Source: Oculina patagonica (taxonomy: Eukaryota). From it: a DNA stretch of 64,000 bases. Shown piece after piece: positions 3,301 to 62,071 of this stretch (positions are counted from its first letter, which is position 1; the number at the start of each line of letters is the position of its first letter). The stretch spans positions 310,001-374,000 of the forward strand of contig NC_135759.1 in NCBI RefSeq assembly GCF_052425735.1. The letters are read 5' to 3'. Below the pieces are notes generated by a model. It searched no databases and was not told the origin of the DNA. It was given only the letters and a program-made list of their open reading frames with translations. Made by a program: the position numbers and the translations under genes.

Positions 3301-6300
3301 TGAGGGCACCACAAAGGACCTTAATGACAAAAAAAGGCCAGTTAGTCAAGTGATCACAAGCAAAATAACTTATAATAATAAAACTGTGATTTGAGAATTG
3401 TACTAATTGGAAGGAGTACAGACAACTTAAGCAAAGGAACATACCATCTAGGTCCATCTGAGCCATAGCTGAGGAAGAGGTTTTGAGGTCCATAGTCATA
3501 ACAAGAATGGCTCCATTGGAATGGGTGGCTATTGGCAGATCTGATGCAAGCCAGTCCATGTCAACAAGAGGCGGAGAGTCCTTGGGCAGTTTATAACTAC
3601 TGTAGATCTCAAACTTATGGAAAACAAAAGATAGAATTTAGTAAAAAAAGAAAATATAAAATTCATGTAATTGTACTGCGGATATACATTTTAAGCAAAT
3701 GAAGGATCATCGCAGTAATGTACTAAACTTAAGCAGTTGAGAAAAGCAATAGCCTGAAAAAAAAAAAAAAAAATCTGAATTTTTTTTTCCCCAGGCTTGC
3801 TTTTTTCAAGTACATTACTGCAATGATCCTGCATTTGCTTAAAATAGAATTTAGTGTTAACCTACTTTTAAATGATAAGGAATGTTTCAGCCAACATGTG
3901 ACTAAAATGCAAGGTATGTACTAGAATGTAACAAAACCTGCATGAAGGCCGGAACACTGAGGCACCCCAAAACAAGCCAGATTAGTTTAGGGTTAAGAAT
4001 TAGGCTCTAAGGTTAGTGGATGTTACCAGTTTAATGGCTGGTGCTTGGTGGTTTTTGTGTTAACTTTTTCAAGGGTGTTCTGGGTTCGGTTGTTTTGGAC
4101 TGTTCAAGTATTTCGTGCTACAGTACCAATGTACAATGTAGCACAAGTCTTAAGCTCAAGTTATAATAACCTTTCAATGCTATAAAATTAAATACCACAG
4201 TAACTAAATTTAAAATACCTTTTGTATATCCCAAATATCAATTCCGTCACTAAAGAGGGCAGCAAGCTTGTTGTTCCCTCGGCCAGGACCAAACTTGATT
4301 TTCTTGATGTGACCTCTGTGTGTTGCTATAGATCTGGTAACATTACAGACAACAGGAACAGAAAGTATAGAGGAATCCCAATTTCTCTAACTTCCTGACT
4401 ACTTGAACCCGTCATTTCCCTTGGATTTGCTCCACTTAGTCCCACACTACAATTTTATCCCTGTTTTCTCAAACTCCCGATTTCCTCAAAACCAATTTCT
4501 GTAAATTTCCCTCTGAGGTTCAAGAAATTGGGTTTCTGTTATAAAAGATAAATCCTTAATTTTCTAGCTAAAACTATCACTTTCTGGATGAACACAAAAG
4601 GAGACTGTAAATCATCACGAGATGAAGGTTCATTTGCAATATTGTCTATCAGTGAATAGTAAATAATGGAAGAACAAATCAAATTACAAGATGTGCAAGA
4701 CAACACTAAAATTTAGTCTTGTAATAAGTGTCTACTATAAAAAAAATAGTGTATACCTTGTTACCCTGGCCTTCAATTCCCAAATGCTCAAGTTGCCATC
4801 AACATCACTCAAGACCAACAAATCACCTTTCCAAGCTATGTAGGTGACGACACCAAGGGTACTCTGGGGGAGTGAGGAAAGGAACTTATTTGTCACTGCT
4901 GCATAAGACAGTTAAGATTTTCACTCTGACTACTAAATAAAAAGAACTCCATATAAATTTCTTTAACAGAATCCATACTTACATCACACTGAACCTTAGA
5001 GCCATCTTTGATAACTGTGCCTTCCACAAGAAAATGATACAACAATCTGTCTTGATCCACACACACAAAGTGTTCTCTTATCCAGGACTGAAAACCAAGG
5101 AGAAAGTAATAATAAAAGTACTTAAACTTCAATGAAAATGTCCTATTCGTCAATTAAACAGTTTGGCACAATACAAAGATAGAAAATAAACATTGTCTCT
5201 AGCATTTGTCTGTGGCTGAATTGTTACTCAAGAAAGCCAGATCCCTTAAGCCAAGATTTCAGTGACACAACAAGCAACACAAGAGGATCAAACTACTGCC
5301 TTACCATAGCTGTTGGATAAAAAGCCTTCCATATTCTCATTTAGTTTAAATAGCTCTAGAATTAACTTTGCAATGGTTGTGAGTGAGTTTCCCATCCATA
5401 ACATATTTGTAATAGCCTCAGAGAGTTGGGTGTGTGAGAGGGGAACACTTCTACCTGTGTCGCTGTGTGGTCTGTCTTGCTTGGGTCCAAAACATTTGCC
5501 GCAATGCCAGAGGGACTCATCTCAAGCTGCTGACTCAGCTTTTTCTTTAGGTGTTTGGAGTGATGTGATGGAGACCATTCCTAGTGAAAAGACAAAACTA
5601 GACTGCAATAAACCATTTCTCTGTCACATAATTATACCAATATTCAAAATTAAATAACGTAAATTTATAATATTTTGACTAAATTTCAAAATTCTGAGGA
5701 GCAGATACCAGCACATTAAAGAACTGTCCATTAGCTTCTATTTGATTGGTCACACACTAGGATTTTCAGACTTGAAGTTTTATAAAACAATCTTGTACAG
5801 CATTACAAAGACCTACATGGCCACATGACAGTAAAACTGAGTGCCTTTGTTGGAACGTTCACATACTTCAACTTCAACTTAATTACTTCCATCACTTACA
5901 TAAATAATTTATACTGGTGAGTTTCAGTTCATTTTCAGACTTTTATGACTTAAAAAGTAAGAACATAGAAGGGTTTCCTGTTTAAAGTGACAGACAAGTT
6001 TGGATGTAAGGATAAAATTTAAAGGATTTACAAAATTATGACTTTTTAAAACATACCAAAGCTGTGACTGATGAAAAGCTTGATGGCATCTCTCTGAGGA
6101 CTGTAAGGTTCTTTAGATCCCACAGCTGCAGTGGCCTGTCTTTGATTATGACGAGAAAGTATTGCCTGTCATGCGCAAGAAATCAGGTAAAAGGTTAAGT
6201 CGCATTCAAGCTTATTGCCTCATCAGGTCGGCACTTATCTCTGGTTCCTGTAGCATAACAATGACTTACAACAATGACTTTCAACTAGTAATAATCATCT

Positions 6301-28895: not shown

Positions 28896-31800
28896 ATGGA
28901 TGACTCGGAATATGAGAGCCTGCCAACAGAGAAAGTTACAGTTCATCTTGCAGCAGGCGCCTTAGCTGGAGTGATGGAACATTGTGTAATGTACCCTGTC
29001 GACGTTGTAAAGGTACGATCAATCCGATTTACGGGCTTCTTGTCAGAATTTAACAACTCTAGTCCATAAGAATGGTCCAATAGACTTTCACAAGACGAAA
29101 CGTGTTGTTTTCGGTTACGGTGGGCTAAAATATCGCCAATGTCTGGCGTTGAGGCTGGTCGCTCAAAGCGTGCCTTCGCGAAATTTGATATTAGGTCATT
29201 TGGGCTGCGGTTCAACTTTCCTCTAGATTTCGCTATTCTTCTGTGAATAATAGTCTCTTATCATTCGTGAGAACTTTTCAGGAGAATTTTGTTCATATTT
29301 TAATCATCTTTTAACTATATACTGATCATAACTTAACGTTTGTTTGCCAACGTCATTGTAGAAACCAACACGTTGTCGATATTCGGTCGGCAATATTGTA
29401 AATATAGTTCTCGGAAATAAGTACGGGCTGCCTGTCCAATGATTGTTTGCCTCGTTTATTTTTCATCCATCAGTTTAAAATATCAGCAATGTTTAATATC
29501 GAGAGTCGAAAATTAATGTGGATTTTTCCCTCTGAAATAAAATCTTATTAAATTTAAAGTACATTATAATAATTATTAATATAAAATAATTTGGGAATGT
29601 CTTGAATTTAATTTATTGTAAGGCAGATGAAGCCCACATAAGTACAAACCTTATTACAAAGACTTATACAAGTTGTATACACACATTATTACACAATTTT
29701 GGTAAACTTTAGACTAGACATAAAATAGCACCACTAATTTGCATATTTTCAGTGCGTACTAACAATAGGTGTATTGTTTGGTTCCAGAAAATATCCATAC
29801 CCCCACCACGGAGGGAATTGGAAATTCCAGAGGGGTGGGGGGGGGGGGTCAAAGGCCCAGGAAATTCCGAGGAGGAGGGGGGGTTGCCAGTGAAATTACG
29901 TTTCCAGATGGTCAAGTTTGATGCAGTGCAAACTAGTTTCAAAATCGTTTCTTACCTACTCTACAAATGTTTTACATAGCAAAAATAGCACCCTGGGTTC
30001 TTGATTCACAATCGTTTTACATTTAAAACGGGTTTTCTTTCTCCTGAAAGCACACTGAAAGCAAACTATTTCACTGAAATCCTCCATGCTCGTTCGTGGA
30101 TGCGGCCGCCATTACTTGTTACCAGTCCCCCAAAACTTGTCATATGGTTTGACCGAAATGCACTGGTGTCAAGCGTTGCTTGTTTCACGTTCGATCAAAG
30201 GAAAATCGTCCTTGTTTGTGAATAGTTTCACGTTTATTAGCGATGAAAATAGTGTAATGATGTCAGAAACTTGAGATTAACTTGTTCTTGTTGTTTCTGG
30301 CTATTTTTTGTAATTTTCCTGTTAAATTTTGCTTTCTAGGCGAGCATTAGCGATTTTGTGATCACGTCTTCGGTGAATGTTTATAATCAACACTTTTCAA
30401 ATCCCTGTTCTGAACATTAAGCGGGTTTCTAAAGCGATTGGAATGAAAAGGGATGGATAGTTATACAACAAGGTAATTTGACAAGTTACTACCAGATATT
30501 TTTTCTGTTAACTTTTAAGGTAAATTTCTGTATTTTGTCTTCAACAGTACATGTATGTATCGGTTTAAGATATCTTCCGATCGATCAGTTATACACTATA
30601 ACTGTTTACAAGAGTGGTGGCCTAAAATTTAGAGCATTGTACAATTAATCTTTTTTTCCAGAGGGGCTGGGGGGTACGCAATATACTTTTGGAAATTCCA
30701 GAGGGGTGGGGGGTTAATTTTTCTTAACAAAAAATGGAAATTCCAGAGAGGTGGGGGGGTCTTACGTTAAACTCCCTCCGTGGTGAGGGTATGGATATTT
30801 TCTGGAACCACACATTGTTTCATAAATGCCCAAATAACGATTTTTCACTTAATTACTTTTTAGACTAGGATGCAGAGTTTGTGTCCACATCCAAATGCTG
30901 TCTACAAAAATATTACCCACGCAATCACGTGTATGGTGAAAAAAGAAGGACTTTTAACACCTCTCAGGGGAATAAATGTGGTGGCACTAGGAGCAGGACC
31001 TGCACATGCCTTATACTTCAGTACATACGAAGCAACAAAGAAGTTCATAAATGGAAACCAGACATCATACAATCCGGTTTCGCATGGTAGGTACACGCTG
31101 ACCCCAAATACCATTGCAGTAATCCGATATTCAATTTTCTGAAAATGTCTGTTTTTGCACTGTTTTACTGGCAAATGTTTTTCCTTAATAAGTTGTTTTA
31201 CTTAACAGATTGTAGTTACCCCTAACTTAAAACAACATTTGACATCAAGTGAAAGTTTGTGTGCTATAAGTGAACTGTGCTTTTAGTACAAGCTTTTATT
31301 TTCCCAAAGAGAAAATGTTTTAAAATTTGCCAAATTTGTGTTTTGAACTTTTCATTGCGGGTTGTAGGTGTCATTTTGTTGCTTTGCAAACTTACAGCCG
31401 TAACACGCAGGTTAGGTATCAATGTTAAGCAGGCATTAGGTATTTTGCAGAACAGTTGTGCTTTTCTTTGAGTTGCAGCACCAGATGCATCTGGGAAGAT
31501 GTTCCAGTAATGGTTTGATTACATGTACAGTTGAACCCTGCGTTTTCCACACCTGCCTTAAACAGACATCACATTATTAAAGATGGTGGTTTTGGTCTTA
31601 AGCTTATGAATTTTTTTTCTTAGTATGGACACCTTATAAGTCCAGTATACGGATACCTTCTATGGACCTGTCAGTGTCCATATTTATAAACAGGGTTCAA
31701 CTGTGGTTTGTTTACTTATTAACTGTGTTGGGTATTAGCTACTGGATGGACTGAAGGTTATAGCATTTTTGTTTGGCCCATGTGTTGAGCTAGAAAGAAG

Positions 31801-32930
31801 GGATGTATTCACCAGGAATAAAATTCTTTTGGTATAAATTTAATGTTTTCCCTCATTGCTGTTGCTGTTACAGTAACTTTAAATAAATTTGAGTTTCTTG
31901 GTTATCTACACTAAGACCTAACTACTTTCTCTGTAAAAAAAAAAAAAACAAGCAAATTATTACTCATCTAATAACATCATGAAAATAAAGTAATATAATC
32001 TTTCAATTTTTTTTTTGTGATAGTTGATGAGCTATGGATTATGAGCATTGTACATTGCTCTGACTGCAAGTTCAAAAAGAAAAATGTTGTTATGGCTTCT
32101 ACATTGCAACTTCTTACAGTAGTTAGGGAAAAACATTTGTTTACAGTCATTAACTGTCTGTGTTTTCATCTTTGTCCTCAGGTCTTGCTGGTGTGTGTGC
32201 TACAGTATTCCATGACGGTGCAATGAATCCCATAGAAGGTGTATCTTAAGCCACCGGCTAGTTTCTTTAACATATTACTCAATTAATGCTACACAGAAAC
32301 TGGATGTAACATTTTCTAAAAATTTTAAACTTTTGGTAAGTTTAAGACTCTAATTCTGTTTTGTTGTACTTTCATGGTGTTTCATCAGTGGTCAAGCAAA
32401 GAATGCAGATATACGGCAGCCCATATCGTGGAGTTCTTCATTGTGTTAAGACTATATTTCAAGAGGAAGGAATCAGAGCCTTTTATCGCAGTTACACAAC
32501 GCAACTCTCCATGAACATTCCGTTTCAGTGCTTGCACTTTACTGTGTACGAGTTTGCGCGAGAGACACTTAACCCATCGCGTGGATATGACCCAAAGACT
32601 CATGTGGTAGCAGGTGCAACTGCAGGGGCAGTGGCTGCTGCTTTGACGACGCCACTAGATGTGGCAAAGACATTACTTAACACCCAAGAAAAGAGTGCCG
32701 TGGGCATACTTGTTAGGCCTGAAGGACATGCTGTGTATGTGAGTGGTATGCTTACAGCATTCCGTTCCATCTACAAGTTACGGGGCTTCTCTGGCTATTT
32801 CCAAGGACTGCAAGCTAGAGTGCTCTATCAGATGCCGTCTTGTGCTATCTGCTGGTCAGTTTACGAGTTTTTCAAGCATTTCTTGCACTTCACAGAGACA
32901 GAAGCTGAGTATGAACTCTCAGTGGTGTGA
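28896..32930 (+). CDS. SLC25A28: Mitoferrin, mitochondrial iron carrier (single SLC25A28/SLC25A37 co-ortholog)
   Basis: Exons 28896-29012 [10 protein letters not shown]...[20 protein letters not shown]; 30864-31086 TRMQSL...[10 protein letters not shown]; 32182-32238 [12 protein letters not shown]; 32389-32930 VVKQRMQ...[16 protein letters not shown]...[14 protein letters not shown]...WSVYEFFK. These are carrier PxD/ExxK motifs and mitoferrin signatures. Confidence 0.95.
29773..30817. mobile_element. MITE, TGTGGTTCCAGAAAATATCCATAC family (shorter copies at ~34911-35108 and ~38415-38638)
   Basis: TIRs tggttccagaaaatatccatacc ... ggtatggatattttctggaacca. Confidence 0.75.
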
Positions 32931-32950
32931 AGAGTTGTTACATGCAAGTT

Positions 32951-34177
32951 TGAAGGAGAAATCTCGGCTGCAGTGGATAAAGCCAGTTTCATCTTCAGCA
33001 GAAATGGTGATCCGCAATACAAAGAAGCCAATTGCAGCACTGCTGCAAGGTTTGTCTTCCATGGAATGCCGTAGTGGAGTACAAATGAAGAGAGAATTTT
33101 CGGCCGCAGAGTGTTCTGCCAGTTTTCAAATCTTCTGACGAGACCACAGCAGTATTGAAAGTTACATGCCATCCAAGACAAGAGAAGGGAGAAAGGAATT
33201 TCGGCTTCAGTGGTTACATGCCAGTTCCTGTGGTCTACTGCTGTGGTTGTAAAATGTAGATGGAAGTCAAACACAAGATGGGAGAGAGGAATTTCGCCTT
33301 CAGAGTTGACATGCCAGTTCCTGCTCCCATTGCTCTAGTTTTTAAATGTAGATGGAAAAGTCACTGAATGTGATCCAAGACGGACGAAAGGAAATTCGGT
33401 TGCAGAGTTTACAGACCAGTTCCTGCGTTCTACCCTATGAATTTATCTATGTATTCTTGGTGCCTTGATAACCTAAAGATAGACTGTAATGTGGTTTATT
33501 GTGCATTGACTGGAAGCATAACCAAAATGTTTTTTTCGGAAATGGTTAAAAGGAATAAACAGGTACCCTGGACTGATTTTACACAATAATGCTGGATGAT
33601 TGTTAGTTTTCACTTTGCATCTTAAAGCTGTAGACTGTGACTTTATGCAGGAACCTTTTTCTGGAACTTTAATAGACAGTAATGTTCAATTGAACACTCA
33701 GGACAATCAAATCTGACAAATAATGTTAATGGATTAACACCAAAGTGTTGGAGAAGCTGCAATTTTCATGCCAATTTTTCACACGGAGATCTTATCTGTG
33801 TGTGTTTGTTTACCATGACAAAACAAAGATGATGGTGATGGACAATCGAATCAGTATTATTTAATTGTGGGGTGGCTGCTCTTTGAAGAAGAATTCGCTG
33901 TTACAGTGTTTAGCCGTTTCTTCTTCCTTTAAGGCACAGGGCTCATTGCAGAGATAAAGACAGGACTATAGACATTCTCTGCTGGGCTTCGGTGTCTTTT
34001 GTTTGGCTGCAAAGCCTTCTACCAGTCTAGCCATTTGACTGGTGCATGACTTTTAACCATTGTACTTAGAATAATAGAGATCTATCCAGTCATAGTATGT
34101 TAATAGTTTTTAAAAATATCTAATAAGCAGAGCAGAACAGAAGCTCGGCTGCAGAGGATTTTGCCAGTTTCATTCTG
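32951..34177 (+). promoter_or_regulatory. Array of IRE-like stem-loops in the mitoferrin 3' UTR
   Basis: Six hairpins (32951-32997, 33087-33135, 33194-33229, 33278-33330, 33382-33430, 34133-34177), each C-N5-CAGWG with a lower stem closing on AGTTYY. AATAAA at 34216. Confidence 0.55.
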
Positions 34178-35854
34178 AAAAGTTAGGTTGTATTATTCTC
34201 GTATATAGTTTGTAAAATAAAACCAATAGATTACAAGTTATTTGAGCTATCCTGACTCTGTTGTGTAATAATGTTAGATGCTTTGTTTTTCAAGTACCAG
34301 GCCTCAACCTAGTTGGCGGTTTCATTGGCGTATGGGAGAAAAAAACATTAATTAAGTTGTCATTGTGTGAAGAAAGGATATTTTTTTATATGCACTTTGT
34401 AACTGTGGTAATTTTTGGGGTGCAATTAAGAGGGGGGAGGGGGTGGTATTCTACCTTAGAAATTTTGCAGAATTAAGTTATTGAAGTCCATATTTCCTGC
34501 ATTCTGAGAGTCATTTTAACCCTCACTCCCGTATAAGGTGAACCTTTCTGGCCCATGGGGCAGTGCGGATGCACCCATTGCACCCCCCCCCCCCCCTCTA
34601 AGGCCCTGTGTAAGTGGGTACGCTTGCCCTGGCTTGACTGTAATGCTGTCGTGGTGTATACAGTGAAAGTGTACCAATAGTTTATTCTAGACCTCCCTGG
34701 ACTTGAACCTTGATAAAAATAGCAAAACAGGTCAGAAGTTCTTTCCAGAATATTGTGTGATTTTATACATAACTTTATTGCACTTTTCAGGTTTTTTTTG
34801 TGATTACTATTGAACTTCATAGTTTTATAGATAATTGTATTCATGACAAAATATTTTATAAAATTATTTTAATAGAATTTCTTTTGACAAGGAATTTGCA
34901 ACAAAATTTCATTGTGTTGCTCCATAAAATATCCATACCTCCCCCCACGGAAGCGATTCTTTTAAAAGAATCCCCCACCCCTCTGTAAATGCCAGTTAAA
35001 TTTCGTACATTTCTCTAAAATTTTTGGTCTTTGAGACCCCCCCCCCCCCCAGGAAATTTCCAATCGCTTCCGTGGGAGGAGTATGGATATTTTTTGGAAC
35101 TATACATTAGTACACATTAACAGGTGGCTACTCACAGTTTAGTCAAATTTATAAGTTTGTGAACTACCTATCACTGACTGGCTTTCTGTCAGAGATAGAC
35201 CACTAATGAGTAGCTGGAAGAATCCTTGAAGATACCATGGCAAGATGTTCCCTTTCATTCATGAATCACAAAAAAATAGGAAATTCTAGTTAGATCTGCT
35301 AGGAAAGGTTAAACTATACTTACTATTGGTTTGTTTTAAAAATGTATGCTTGTCAAAAATGAAGACTTGATCCACTCAGATTTTTAGAAATTGATATTAC
35401 ACTTATACAGCTCAGTGGGGATATGATAAAGGAAAAAAGATGTCTTGATACAAAACCAAATTCTCTAACACAAAATCACAAAAATTTATCGGAAACAGTA
35501 ACGAGTAGGACTTGAGCTTTTGATGTGCCTAATGTGTACTTTCAGGTACTTCTCCTTGATCGTAGGCCTAGATGTAGTAGCTAAGGCTAGCACTCAAGCA
35601 TGGTAGAACAGGGACAGGGTGATCCCATCCCCTTACTCACAAACATGCATATCACATGCTCATACTGTCTGAATCAATTGTGTCACCACACATGGACCCC
35701 TTATCACCCTGCTCTTGCCAAGATCCTAAGTTTTGCAGAGCTGCAACTAATGACCCTACTGAAGGTATATGGGCCTTAATTGCCTGACAGTTCATCACTA
35801 GCTACTGGCTATGATGGCATAATAATTATATTCTGCATGAACTATAACAGCCTT

Positions 35855-61466: not shown

Positions 61467-61982
61467 ACAAGCTGGGGGGTATTAGTAGAGGATAATTTAT
61501 ATAACTACAAGTTTATTAACATCCATTGGACTTCAATGGAAGAGTAAAGTTACATGTTAGTTCAGATCTTGACTCGTTCACTATGTAATAGCCAAGAACC
61601 CTATGTTATTATATTTAAAAATATTTTATCATTGTCTAAGTATATATATATATATATATATATTTGCTAAATTTTTAAAGAACATTAAAAATAAATGCTA
61701 CTATAAAAGATGTGTTTCTTATGCACAAGAACAAAAGATGATGCATTATTCCTCATAATCTAGCCCCAAACATTGTCCATATAAATGCATGGATAAAGCC
61801 AATACTGTACAATCGAACTTTTTTTTTAGCTGCAGTTTATACATATATAAAGTTGGTTCTAACTCGCTCTCTCATTGGTTGTTTCGTGGTCCGCATTGAC
61901 TGAAGTTGTTTTGCACAGCGGAGACAAATGAACAAGCGATGACACGATCCCCAGCCACAAAAATGACCTTGCTCTCAGTGTG

Positions 61983-62071
61983 TGGCTTCATAGCTCAGTT
62001 GGTAGAGCATCGCGCCAGTATTCGCGGAGGTCACGGGTTCGAATCCCGATAAACCATGAATTTTTTTCAGG
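61983..62071 (+). mobile_element. tRNA-derived SINE head
   Basis: tagctcagttggtagagc (A box), gggttcgaatccc (B box), T-run. Acceptor stem and anticodon arm do not fold canonically. Confidence 0.7.

Follow-up and report, generated by a model that had tools for sequence, protein, structure and literature searches.

Iron-responsive element-like hairpins with a nine-base loop in the 3' untranslated region of coral mitoferrin mRNA

The 64-kb stretch of Oculina patagonica DNA analysed here (the window) carries the 3' end of a gene for mitoferrin, a mitochondrial iron importer, and the 3' untranslated region (UTR) of this gene, which lies on the + strand of the window (the sense strand of mitoferrin), contains six copies of a hairpin that resembles the iron-responsive element (IRE). 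The hairpins are real and transcribed, they occur on the sense strand only, they are specific to this gene as far as tested, and they are conserved among stony corals and backed by compensatory changes. We regard it as highly probable that they are conserved candidate protein-binding hairpins that set the stability or the translation of mitoferrin mRNA. Much more tentatively, the features of the sequence would fit a multi-copy variant of the IRE with a nine-base loop (nonaloop) that is read by the cluster-free form of iron regulatory protein 1 (apo-IRP1) and that regulates mitochondrial iron import, a reading that we hold to be plausible and yet open to considerable doubt.

Hairpins downstream of the mitoferrin stop codon

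Reading of the sequence located all six cores, each with its unpaired C, as well as the stop codon and the AATAAA poly(A) signal, exactly where the original prediction had put them (Table 1). The pattern TCGSYYKCAGWG matches six times in the window, always on the + strand and between 32964 and 34156, and has no match elsewhere in the 64 kb; dinucleotide-preserving shuffles give an expectation of 0.10 matches, and none of 100 shuffles attained six. Copies 3-5 form a tandem unit of ~93-102 nucleotides (nt; repeat families D2 and D5). Because the copies are too diverged and their spacing too irregular, Tandem Repeats Finder reported no array. The UTR also holds a diverged copy 7, which is 85% conserved with Pocillopora across 60 nt, and a decayed copy 8; repeat finding had placed these two at 33882-33920 and 34005-34026, respectively.

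The open reading frame (ORF) that ends at 32930 is the final exon of a mitochondrial carrier whose homologs across animals bear the name mitoferrin-1 or mitoferrin-2. In the tree built from the exon protein, it is 100% identical to Oculina patagonica mitoferrin-2-like over 180 columns and groups with Orbicella in a starred clade, as a robust-clade stony coral. Contigs from the public RNA run X1 bridge the splice joint 32236>32387, which has GT..AG ends, and word depth in this run is 400-870 across 32387-34149 and zero over the intron and over 34232-34415. Because the X1 contigs cover 32387-34149 and the spliced joint, copies 1-5, 7, and 8 are in the spliced transcript; the hairpin is likewise inside the transcript in an acroporid coral, for which spliced transcripts were available. 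The X1 contigs stop at 34149, so that only the first bases of copy 6 are directly seen as transcribed, and this copy would be part of the mRNA if, as we infer, the distal AATAAA is used. A second AATAAA is present at 33557-33562, just 3' of copy 5, and its use would give a short isoform with copies 1-5 only; RNA depth remains high past this site, indicating that the long form of the UTR dominates in X1.

Structure, covariation, and conservation of the element

The original prediction had given all six copies one architecture, in which an outer stem and a small internal loop come before a lower stem and an unpaired C. Single-sequence folds recover this architecture in copies 1, 4, 5, and 6 but only in part in copies 2 and 3: in copy 2, the outer and lower stems are kept and the top is paired otherwise, and in copy 3, the outer stem has just 3 bp. 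The pairing changes cited earlier are real: the upper stem GGC/GCC is replaced by GGU/ACC in copy 5, and a C-C mismatch is found in copy 4. Among the paralogs, the outer stems vary in sequence with pairing retained; between copies 4 and 5, two double changes in these stems are compensatory. The stability of the single hairpins is unremarkable, with folding energies of -11 to -19.5 kcal/mol and z between -0.3 and -2.7 for the six copies (copy 4, -19.5 kcal/mol and z -2.68).

The consensus fold that RNAalifold derived from a plain MAFFT alignment, which was not fitted to structure, consists of 4 bp G(G/A)AA/UUYC, a 1-nt bulge, 2 bp YU/AG, the unpaired C, and 3 bp GGC/GCC that close a 14-nt open loop. 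In an alignment of n=29 distinct copies that was fitted to a covariance model, 93.9% of the cells are paired and 5/9 pairs changed on both sides, these counts being of cells and not of independent events. Only 0-1 of 500 shuffles matched the paired and covarying values, and slid controls were only 19-53% paired; the same pairs emerge from the alignment that was not fitted to structure. The compensatory changes include CU/AG to GU/AC in Pocillopora, GGC/GCC to GGU/ACC or GUC/GGC, and exchanges between G-C and A-U in the lower stem.

Allowing 1 mismatch or one 3' bulge and any loop length, a five-position upper stem can be drawn in 26/29 copies, of which 3 are perfect, 11 have one 3' bulge, and 12 have one mismatch. 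Based on information content, U at n7 reaches 2.0 bits, the bulged C 1.34, the loop bases C-A-G 1.78, 1.78, and 1.57, and the second loop G 1.57; G9-G10-C11 and GCCAGUU of the 3' strand are also high-information columns, and the bases after CAGWG are weakly constrained (0.3-1.0 bit). From the outside inwards, the element consists of an outer stem, the lower stem G(G/A)AA/UUYC, a 1-nt bulge, YU/AG (2 bp), the unpaired C, a possible upper stem of five positions in which GGCUG faces ...GCC and one mismatch or one 3' bulge occurs, and a loop of ~9 nt, CAGWGNNNN.

For comparison, orthologs were fetched via exact protein look-up, giving loci from Porites lutea (L001), Tara Porites contigs (L009, L010), a sister species with 97% protein identity (L002-L004), Orbicella faveolata (L017), Pocillopora (L011, L012), Nematostella (L005, L006), and other cnidarian loci (L007, L008, L013); the acroporid is represented by spliced transcript contigs (L014-L016) with a complete coding sequence of 313 amino acids. 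A covariance model built from 19 copies (R1) gives 32 matches at E<0.01, which come from the window and from seven scleractinian loci and are all on the sense strand and downstream of the mitoferrin stop; it gives no match in the flanks or elsewhere in the window. A separate scan with R1 found four copies in Orbicella, two of them decayed. The copy number is six good and two decayed in Oculina, 5 in the sister species, 4-5 in Porites, one good plus decayed copies in Pocillopora, and 1 in the acroporid. The array varies by lineage, from the single acroporid copy to the six of the window. In a pattern scan of JGI metagenomes, two contigs among the 120 matches listed are coral-like (GC content 0.39-0.40, two copies each, GGAAUU flank), and both have a mitoferrin exon directly upstream (93-95% identity); the other 118 matches listed lack the GGAA flank and are due to chance in GC-rich microbial contigs. 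As far as tested, i.e. within the window, the coral loci, and the JGI matches listed, the motif is confined to mitoferrin and does not occur as a dispersed repeat.

The copies can be sorted into types by sequence and position. For type A (GAAUUYUCGG...GCCAGUUUUCAA), the distance from the stop is 170-172 nt in Oculina, Porites, and the acroporid and 128-150 nt in Pocillopora and Orbicella; the representative of this type in the window, copy 2, has orthologs in all four of these other corals, decayed in Pocillopora. Type B (GGAAUUUCGG...CAUGCCAGUUCC) is the tandemly amplified type, with three copies in Oculina, two each in the sister species and Orbicella, a single one in Pocillopora, and two or three in Porites. 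In Oculina, the sister species, and Porites, type C (AGAAGCUCGG...UUUGCCAGUUUC) sits shortly before the poly(A) signal, at the position of copy 6, and in Orbicella and Pocillopora it is decayed. The acroporid UTR (889 nt, with AATAAA near its end) has type A only, and the type of copy 1 was seen only in the Oculina/Orbicella group. Porites and acroporids belong to the complex clade of corals, and Oculina, Orbicella, and Pocillopora to the robust clade; the split between the two is very old. Because the hairpin is present in orthologous UTRs of both of these major clades, the element predates the basal split of living Scleractinia, and, judging from the sequences, at least three copy types (A, B, and C) appear to predate it as well. 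Type B is amplified and lost through tandem duplication in separate lineages. Every lineage of Scleractinia sampled retains at least one C-N5-CAGWG copy. Few blocks of the UTR can still be aligned by BLAST with Porites, Pocillopora, and the acroporid, and the hairpins are among them; with the acroporid, the hairpin is the sole such block.

The number of type-B copies also differs within Porites, with three in a Tara contig (L009 2481-2700) and two in P. lutea (L001 10785-10914). These units of ~89 nt are nearly identical. The difference in count means that the type-B copy number is polymorphic or quickly changing within the genus.

Features of the locus

The coordinates of the gene features and of the hairpin copies are collected in Table 1.

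Table 1. Mitoferrin features and hairpin copies in the window
Feature	Position	Strand	Basis or details
Last coding exon of mitoferrin (SLC25A28/37 family)	32387..32930	+	ORF and translation; homologs with PF00153
Mitoferrin stop codon	32928-32930	+	Read in sequence
3' UTR of mitoferrin	32931..34240	+	RNA contigs to at least 34149; end inferred from AATAAA
Hairpin copy 1	32948..32999	+	C32965-GGCUG-CAGUG; covariance model 45.1 bits
Hairpin copy 2, type A	33087..33135	+	C33101-GGCCG-CAGAG; 50.7 bits; ~170 nt after stop
Hairpin copy 3, type B	33188..33236	+	C33202-GGCUU-CAGUG; tandem-unit member; absent in sister species (L002)
Hairpin copy 4, type B	33278..33330	+	C33295-GCCUU-CAGAG; C-C mismatch; 7-bp outer stem; absent in Orbicella
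Hairpin copy 5, type B	33382..33430	+	C33397-GGUUG-CAGAG; upper stem GGU/ACC
Diverged copy 7	33885..33926	+	9-bp stem GAAGAAGAA/UUCUUCUUC, C-N7-CAGUG; z -3.19; 13.9 bits
Decayed copy 8	34000..34026	+	GGCUGCAAAG...ACCAGU; repeat family D4; 10 bits, E 5.5
Hairpin copy 6, type C	34133..34177	+	C34146-GGCUG-CAGAG; 47.3 bits; 40-80 nt upstream of poly(A) signal
AATAAA poly(A) signal	34216-34221	+	Read directly; kept in L002 and Orbicella; RNA depth zero from 34232

Other parts of the UTR are conserved as well. The block at 33805-33836 (GUUUGUUUACCAUGACAAAACAAAGAUGAUGG) shares 94% identity over 32 nt with the UTR of Porites lutea (L001 11053-11084), is also present in L002 and Orbicella, and can fold into an A-U-rich stem UUUGUUU/AAACAAA; from its sequence, it looks like a second, unrelated deeply conserved element of the same UTR. 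A separate conserved hairpin at 34016-34043, CCAGUC-UAGCCAUUU-GACUGG, is 93% identical to Pocillopora, and its stem is CCAGUU/AACUGG in Orbicella, which is a compensatory double change, and CCAGUU/GACUGG in L002, which is the G-U intermediate. The spacer blocks 33054-33070, 33140-33163, and 33253-33279 are 89-100% identical to the Pocillopora UTR, which implies that the spacers are also constrained in robust-clade corals.

Upstream of the last intron, X1 covers 31306-32236 at depth 147, compared with at least 450 in the last exon; this coverage could reflect intron retention, an alternative exon, or an overlapping transcript, and only the joint 32236>32387 is clearly spliced. A dispersed repeat surrounds mitoferrin on both strands (29750-29980, 30730-30870, and 34470-34990), with pseudo-ORFs that share a run of 10 residues, and X1 contigs that connect 30711 with 35067 and lead from 35039 back to 30777 fit copies of one repeat family. 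A tRNA-like sequence (GGCUUCAUAGCUCAGUUGGUAGAGCAUCGCGCCAGU...) at about 61980-62030 and at about L007 1259 (- strand) was a chance partial match in the motif search; it is probably a tRNA gene or a tRNA-derived short interspersed nuclear element (SINE). An intron of Nematostella mitoferrin (L005 6740-7405) contains a tandem array with units of ~54-60 nt, which gives a row of identical weak R1 matches (9.7 bits) and is unrelated to the hairpins.

Candidate readers of the hairpins and comparison with known systems

Outside vertebrates, regulation by IRPs and IREs mostly involves 5' IREs, chiefly those of ferritin, and the stabilising arrangement in the 3' UTR is viewed as an innovation of vertebrate transferrin receptor 1 (TfR1). 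Piccinelli and Samuelsson reportedly traced ferritin 5' IREs back to sponges and cnidarians in 2007 and described 3' IREs as vertebrate-specific. We know of no published summary that lists an IRE for mitoferrin. Our full-text literature search found no IRE or UTR element for mitoferrin of any animal, and it found nothing on coral mitoferrin. A survey of sponges with SIREs likewise lists no IRE for mitoferrin (PMC7034838).

The original prediction interpreted the hairpins as a multi-element iron switch or as a site for another RNA-binding protein, and this interpretation is partly supported. The IRE-type reading is favoured by the constrained positions, which are IRE-like, and by the mRNA, which encodes an iron importer, but not by the Rfam models, the SIREs core rule, or the six-base loop. 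Specifically, the bulged C is present in 24/29 distinct copies, including all six copies of the window, and is unpaired in the consensus fold; the n7-n25 pair is U-A in 29/29 copies, n25 always being A and never G, as the IRE requires; and the spacing from C to CAGWG is exactly 5 nt in all copies, without any indel. CAGWG itself is present in 24/29 copies, and the variable loop position is A or U in 28/29, corresponding to the W of the IRE consensus CAGWGH (SIREs motifs 1 and 2; PMC2896125).

Because these constrained positions coincide with IRE identity elements, because the mRNA encodes an iron importer, and because the RNA-contact residues of IRP1 are conserved, being near-invariant even in sponges (PMC7034838), we prefer apo-IRP1 as the candidate reader. 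In the proposed mechanism, the reader would be the cluster-free cytosolic aconitase (apo-IRP1): at low cytosolic iron or low supply of iron-sulfur (Fe-S) clusters, IRP1 would bind the hairpins and the mRNA would be stabilised, mitochondrial iron import would go up, Fe-S synthesis would recover, and IRP1 would be turned off. The elements would be expanded-loop variants of the IRE that retain the C-G cross-loop pair and the AGW triloop and extrude the 3 extra nt; the least-constrained loop bases are those that would be extruded after G18. The IRP1-IRE structure of Walden et al. from 2006 is said to show the bulged C, a helical ruler, and an AGW triloop closed by C-G. Several copies could offset a lower affinity per site, and IRP1 bound in the 3' UTR would stabilise the mRNA by analogy with TfR1, the mRNA of which is stabilised by IRP binding to 3'-UTR IREs (PMC4056636). 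We consider the full mechanism, with apo-IRP1 as the candidate reader and iron feedback via mitoferrin mRNA, a serious possibility that nevertheless falls short of being probable.

Several observations weigh against this reading. The loop is 9 nt long (CAGWG plus four bases) in 21/29 copies, 7-10 nt in six more (8 or 10 nt in most of them), and 6 nt in two. Of the latter, only the Porites variant with a deletion (L010:3548, within 3538-3576) looks functional, the other being a Pocillopora copy in decay with two stem mismatches and the loop CACAG. In minimum-energy folds, just 3-4 positions of the upper stem are paired, namely GGC/GCC and sometimes a fourth. The earlier caveat that the hairpins are non-canonical, with extra nucleotides on the 3' side and few upper pairs, is sharpened by these loop lengths together with the five-position stem that 26/29 copies can form. 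Moreover, the bulged C is replaced by U in 5/29 copies, and in copies 1, 3, and 6, position 19 is G, which is excluded by the H of CAGWGH. The Rfam models IRE_I and IRE_II gave no match at E<=10 on standard copies (7 kb, 501 nt, and the acroporid copy). We re-coded the SIREs core rule (C8; five upper pairs with <=1 mismatch or one 3' bulge; <=2 wobbles; n7-n25) from PMC2896125, and 1/29 distinct copies passes while 28/29 fail. The sole passing copy is L010:3548, in which three loop bases are lost; it aligns to Rfam IRE_II with 14.5 bits (E 4.4), well below the gathering score of 30, and in this alignment (UCGGCUGCAGAGUCAuGCCA vs UCgGcggCAGUGUcc.gCcA) the likeness to IRE_II extends to both stem strands. 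A relaxed rule with an expanded loop is unspecific; because it gives ~25 background matches in 313 kb, it describes the element and does not diagnose it. Copy 7, although related and conserved, is not IRE-like, and domain IV of the hepatitis C virus (HCV) internal ribosome entry site is an example of an IRE look-alike that human IRP1 does not bind (PMC2649033).

The pattern of conservation counts on the same side. The hairpin cores are barely ahead of the rest of the conserved UTR (90 vs 86% with the sister species and 80 vs 74% with Orbicella), and in some copies the stem is kept and CAGWG is lost (CAGCU at 4646 and CACAG at 5537 in Pocillopora, CGAAG at 4525 in Orbicella). With filters off, R1 found nothing above 10 bits in Nematostella or in L007, L008, and L013, and because no copy was detected in Nematostella, the prediction for cnidarian mitoferrin was too broad and should be narrowed to scleractinian mitoferrin. 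The element is IRE-like in its conserved positions yet fails the loop geometry that defines the family. The IRE label for these hairpins is not established; IRE-like hairpin with a nonaloop, having CAGWG plus four bases where the IRE has one, is the accurate description.

The hairpins may instead be functional 3'-UTR elements that are read by a different RNA-binding protein without a link to iron, the likeness to IREs being coincidental, and we hold this to be almost as likely as a reading by apo-IRP1. The 9-nt loop and the weak upper stem misfit the known geometry of IRP ligands (PMC2649033), the copies with U in place of the bulged C point in the same direction, and the conserved blocks and hairpins of this UTR that are not IREs (33805-33836, copy 7, and 34016-34043) suggest a dense UTR bound by multiple factors. 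This explanation would, however, have to accept a double coincidence, in that the most constrained positions match IRE identity elements one for one and do so in the mRNA of an iron transporter. We know of no other RNA-binding protein that recognises C-A-G-W-G at a distance of 5 nt from a bulged C together with a base other than G at n25. The known motifs of Smaug (CNGG), Roquin (YRY triloop), Musashi, Rbfox, and MBNL do not match the conserved positions. A kissing dimer via a palindromic CUGCAG loop was ruled out, copies 2, 3, and 4 not being palindromic there.

Explanations without a bound protein appear considerably weaker than either apo-IRP1 or another protein. That three copy types stand at corresponding positions in both clades while most spacers are unalignable, that every lineage sampled retains at least one C-N5-CAGWG copy, and that double substitutions are compensatory makes it unlikely that the hairpins are a neutral relic, i.e. 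a tandemly duplicated hairpin segment that decays slowly and has no function, even though such a relic would account for the tandem unit (~95-100 nt) of copies 3-5, for the variation in copy number among close relatives (L002 without copy 3, Orbicella without copy 4), for the decay of several copies, for cores that are barely more conserved than spacers in close relatives, and for the unremarkable stability of single hairpins. Somewhat less credible still are target sites of small RNAs or sites that act at the DNA level rather than as a protein-binding RNA structure. The 5' arm and loop (GGAAUUUCGGCUGCAGAG) form a nearly invariant block of 18 nt, targeting by small RNAs typically involves repeated 3'-UTR sites, and cnidarian miRNAs and piRNAs use extended complementarity; a linear target, however, would not need two conserved blocks that are mutually complementary and covary, the motif is found on one strand only, and a literature search for the reverse-complement strings gave only unrelated primer matches. 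We give least credence to a fragment of a dispersed repeat, such as a miniature inverted-repeat transposable element (MITE) or a SINE, lodged in the UTR: there are dispersed repeats near the gene in the window, and the loci scanned are a small part of any coral genome, yet the window, the ~110 kb of loci sampled from seven coral taxa, and the 120 JGI matches listed contain copies of the motif in mitoferrin UTRs only, and all copies are on the sense strand.

If the reading by apo-IRP1 is true, IRP1 would tolerate three extruded bases after G18, and the definition of an IRP ligand would be widened. The hairpins would then, to our knowledge, be the first multi-IRE switch in a 3' UTR outside vertebrate TfR1 and the first IRE on mitoferrin, and they would link a cytosolic Fe-S sensor directly to the transporter that feeds Fe-S synthesis. 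Specifically, this would constitute a negative feedback, in which loss of Fe-S clusters activates IRP1, mitoferrin goes up, and mitochondrial iron and Fe-S synthesis go up in turn. It would also provide a post-transcriptional marker of the iron status of the coral host, with relevance to symbiosis and to bleaching under iron limitation. Even if the reader is not IRP1, the hairpins are a well-defined, deeply conserved, gene-specific RNA element with a copy number that varies by lineage.

Compared with the canonical IRE (RF00037 IRE_I and RF02253 IRE_II), the coral element has the same unpaired 5' C, the same five bases to CAGWG, the n7-n25 pair, the lower stem, a possible C-G cross-loop pair with an AGW triloop, and a place in an iron-handling mRNA, and it resembles the IRE_II consensus in primary sequence on both strands (UCGGC..CAGWG..GCCA). 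It differs in that the loop is 9 nt (8-10) rather than 6, in that n12 and n13 pair only via a mismatch or a 3' bulge, and in that the C is followed below by 2 bp and then by a second 1-nt bulge. As in functional atypical IREs, 11/29 coral copies reach a perfect 5-bp upper stem only with one bulge in the 3' strand; the atypical IREs, however, keep the six-base loop, whereas the coral copies add three loop bases besides the bulge. HCV domain IV departs from the consensus at three points; its loop is one base longer, two further bases face the bulge, and binding was regained once these extras had been removed (PMC2649033). The coral hairpins share with it the bulged C, extra loop bases, a possible C-G cross-loop pair, and possibly its five pairs, but they keep G at the apex of the triloop and have nothing extra opposite the C, while their extra loop bases are more numerous.

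Vertebrate TfR1, with five IREs in its 3' UTR (PMC4056636), differs from the coral system in the protein, in the compartment, which is the mitochondrial inner membrane for mitoferrin, and in the phylum, and the coral copy number ranges from 1 to 6 and the hairpins are non-canonical. Between the coral hairpins, no determinant of instability and no nuclease site was identified, and no search aimed at them was made. Nevertheless, both systems have several hairpins spread over ~1.2 kb of the 3' UTR of an mRNA for iron uptake, and they would share the same proposed logic, which on the coral side is a candidate only, in which low iron leads to a stable mRNA and thereby to more uptake.

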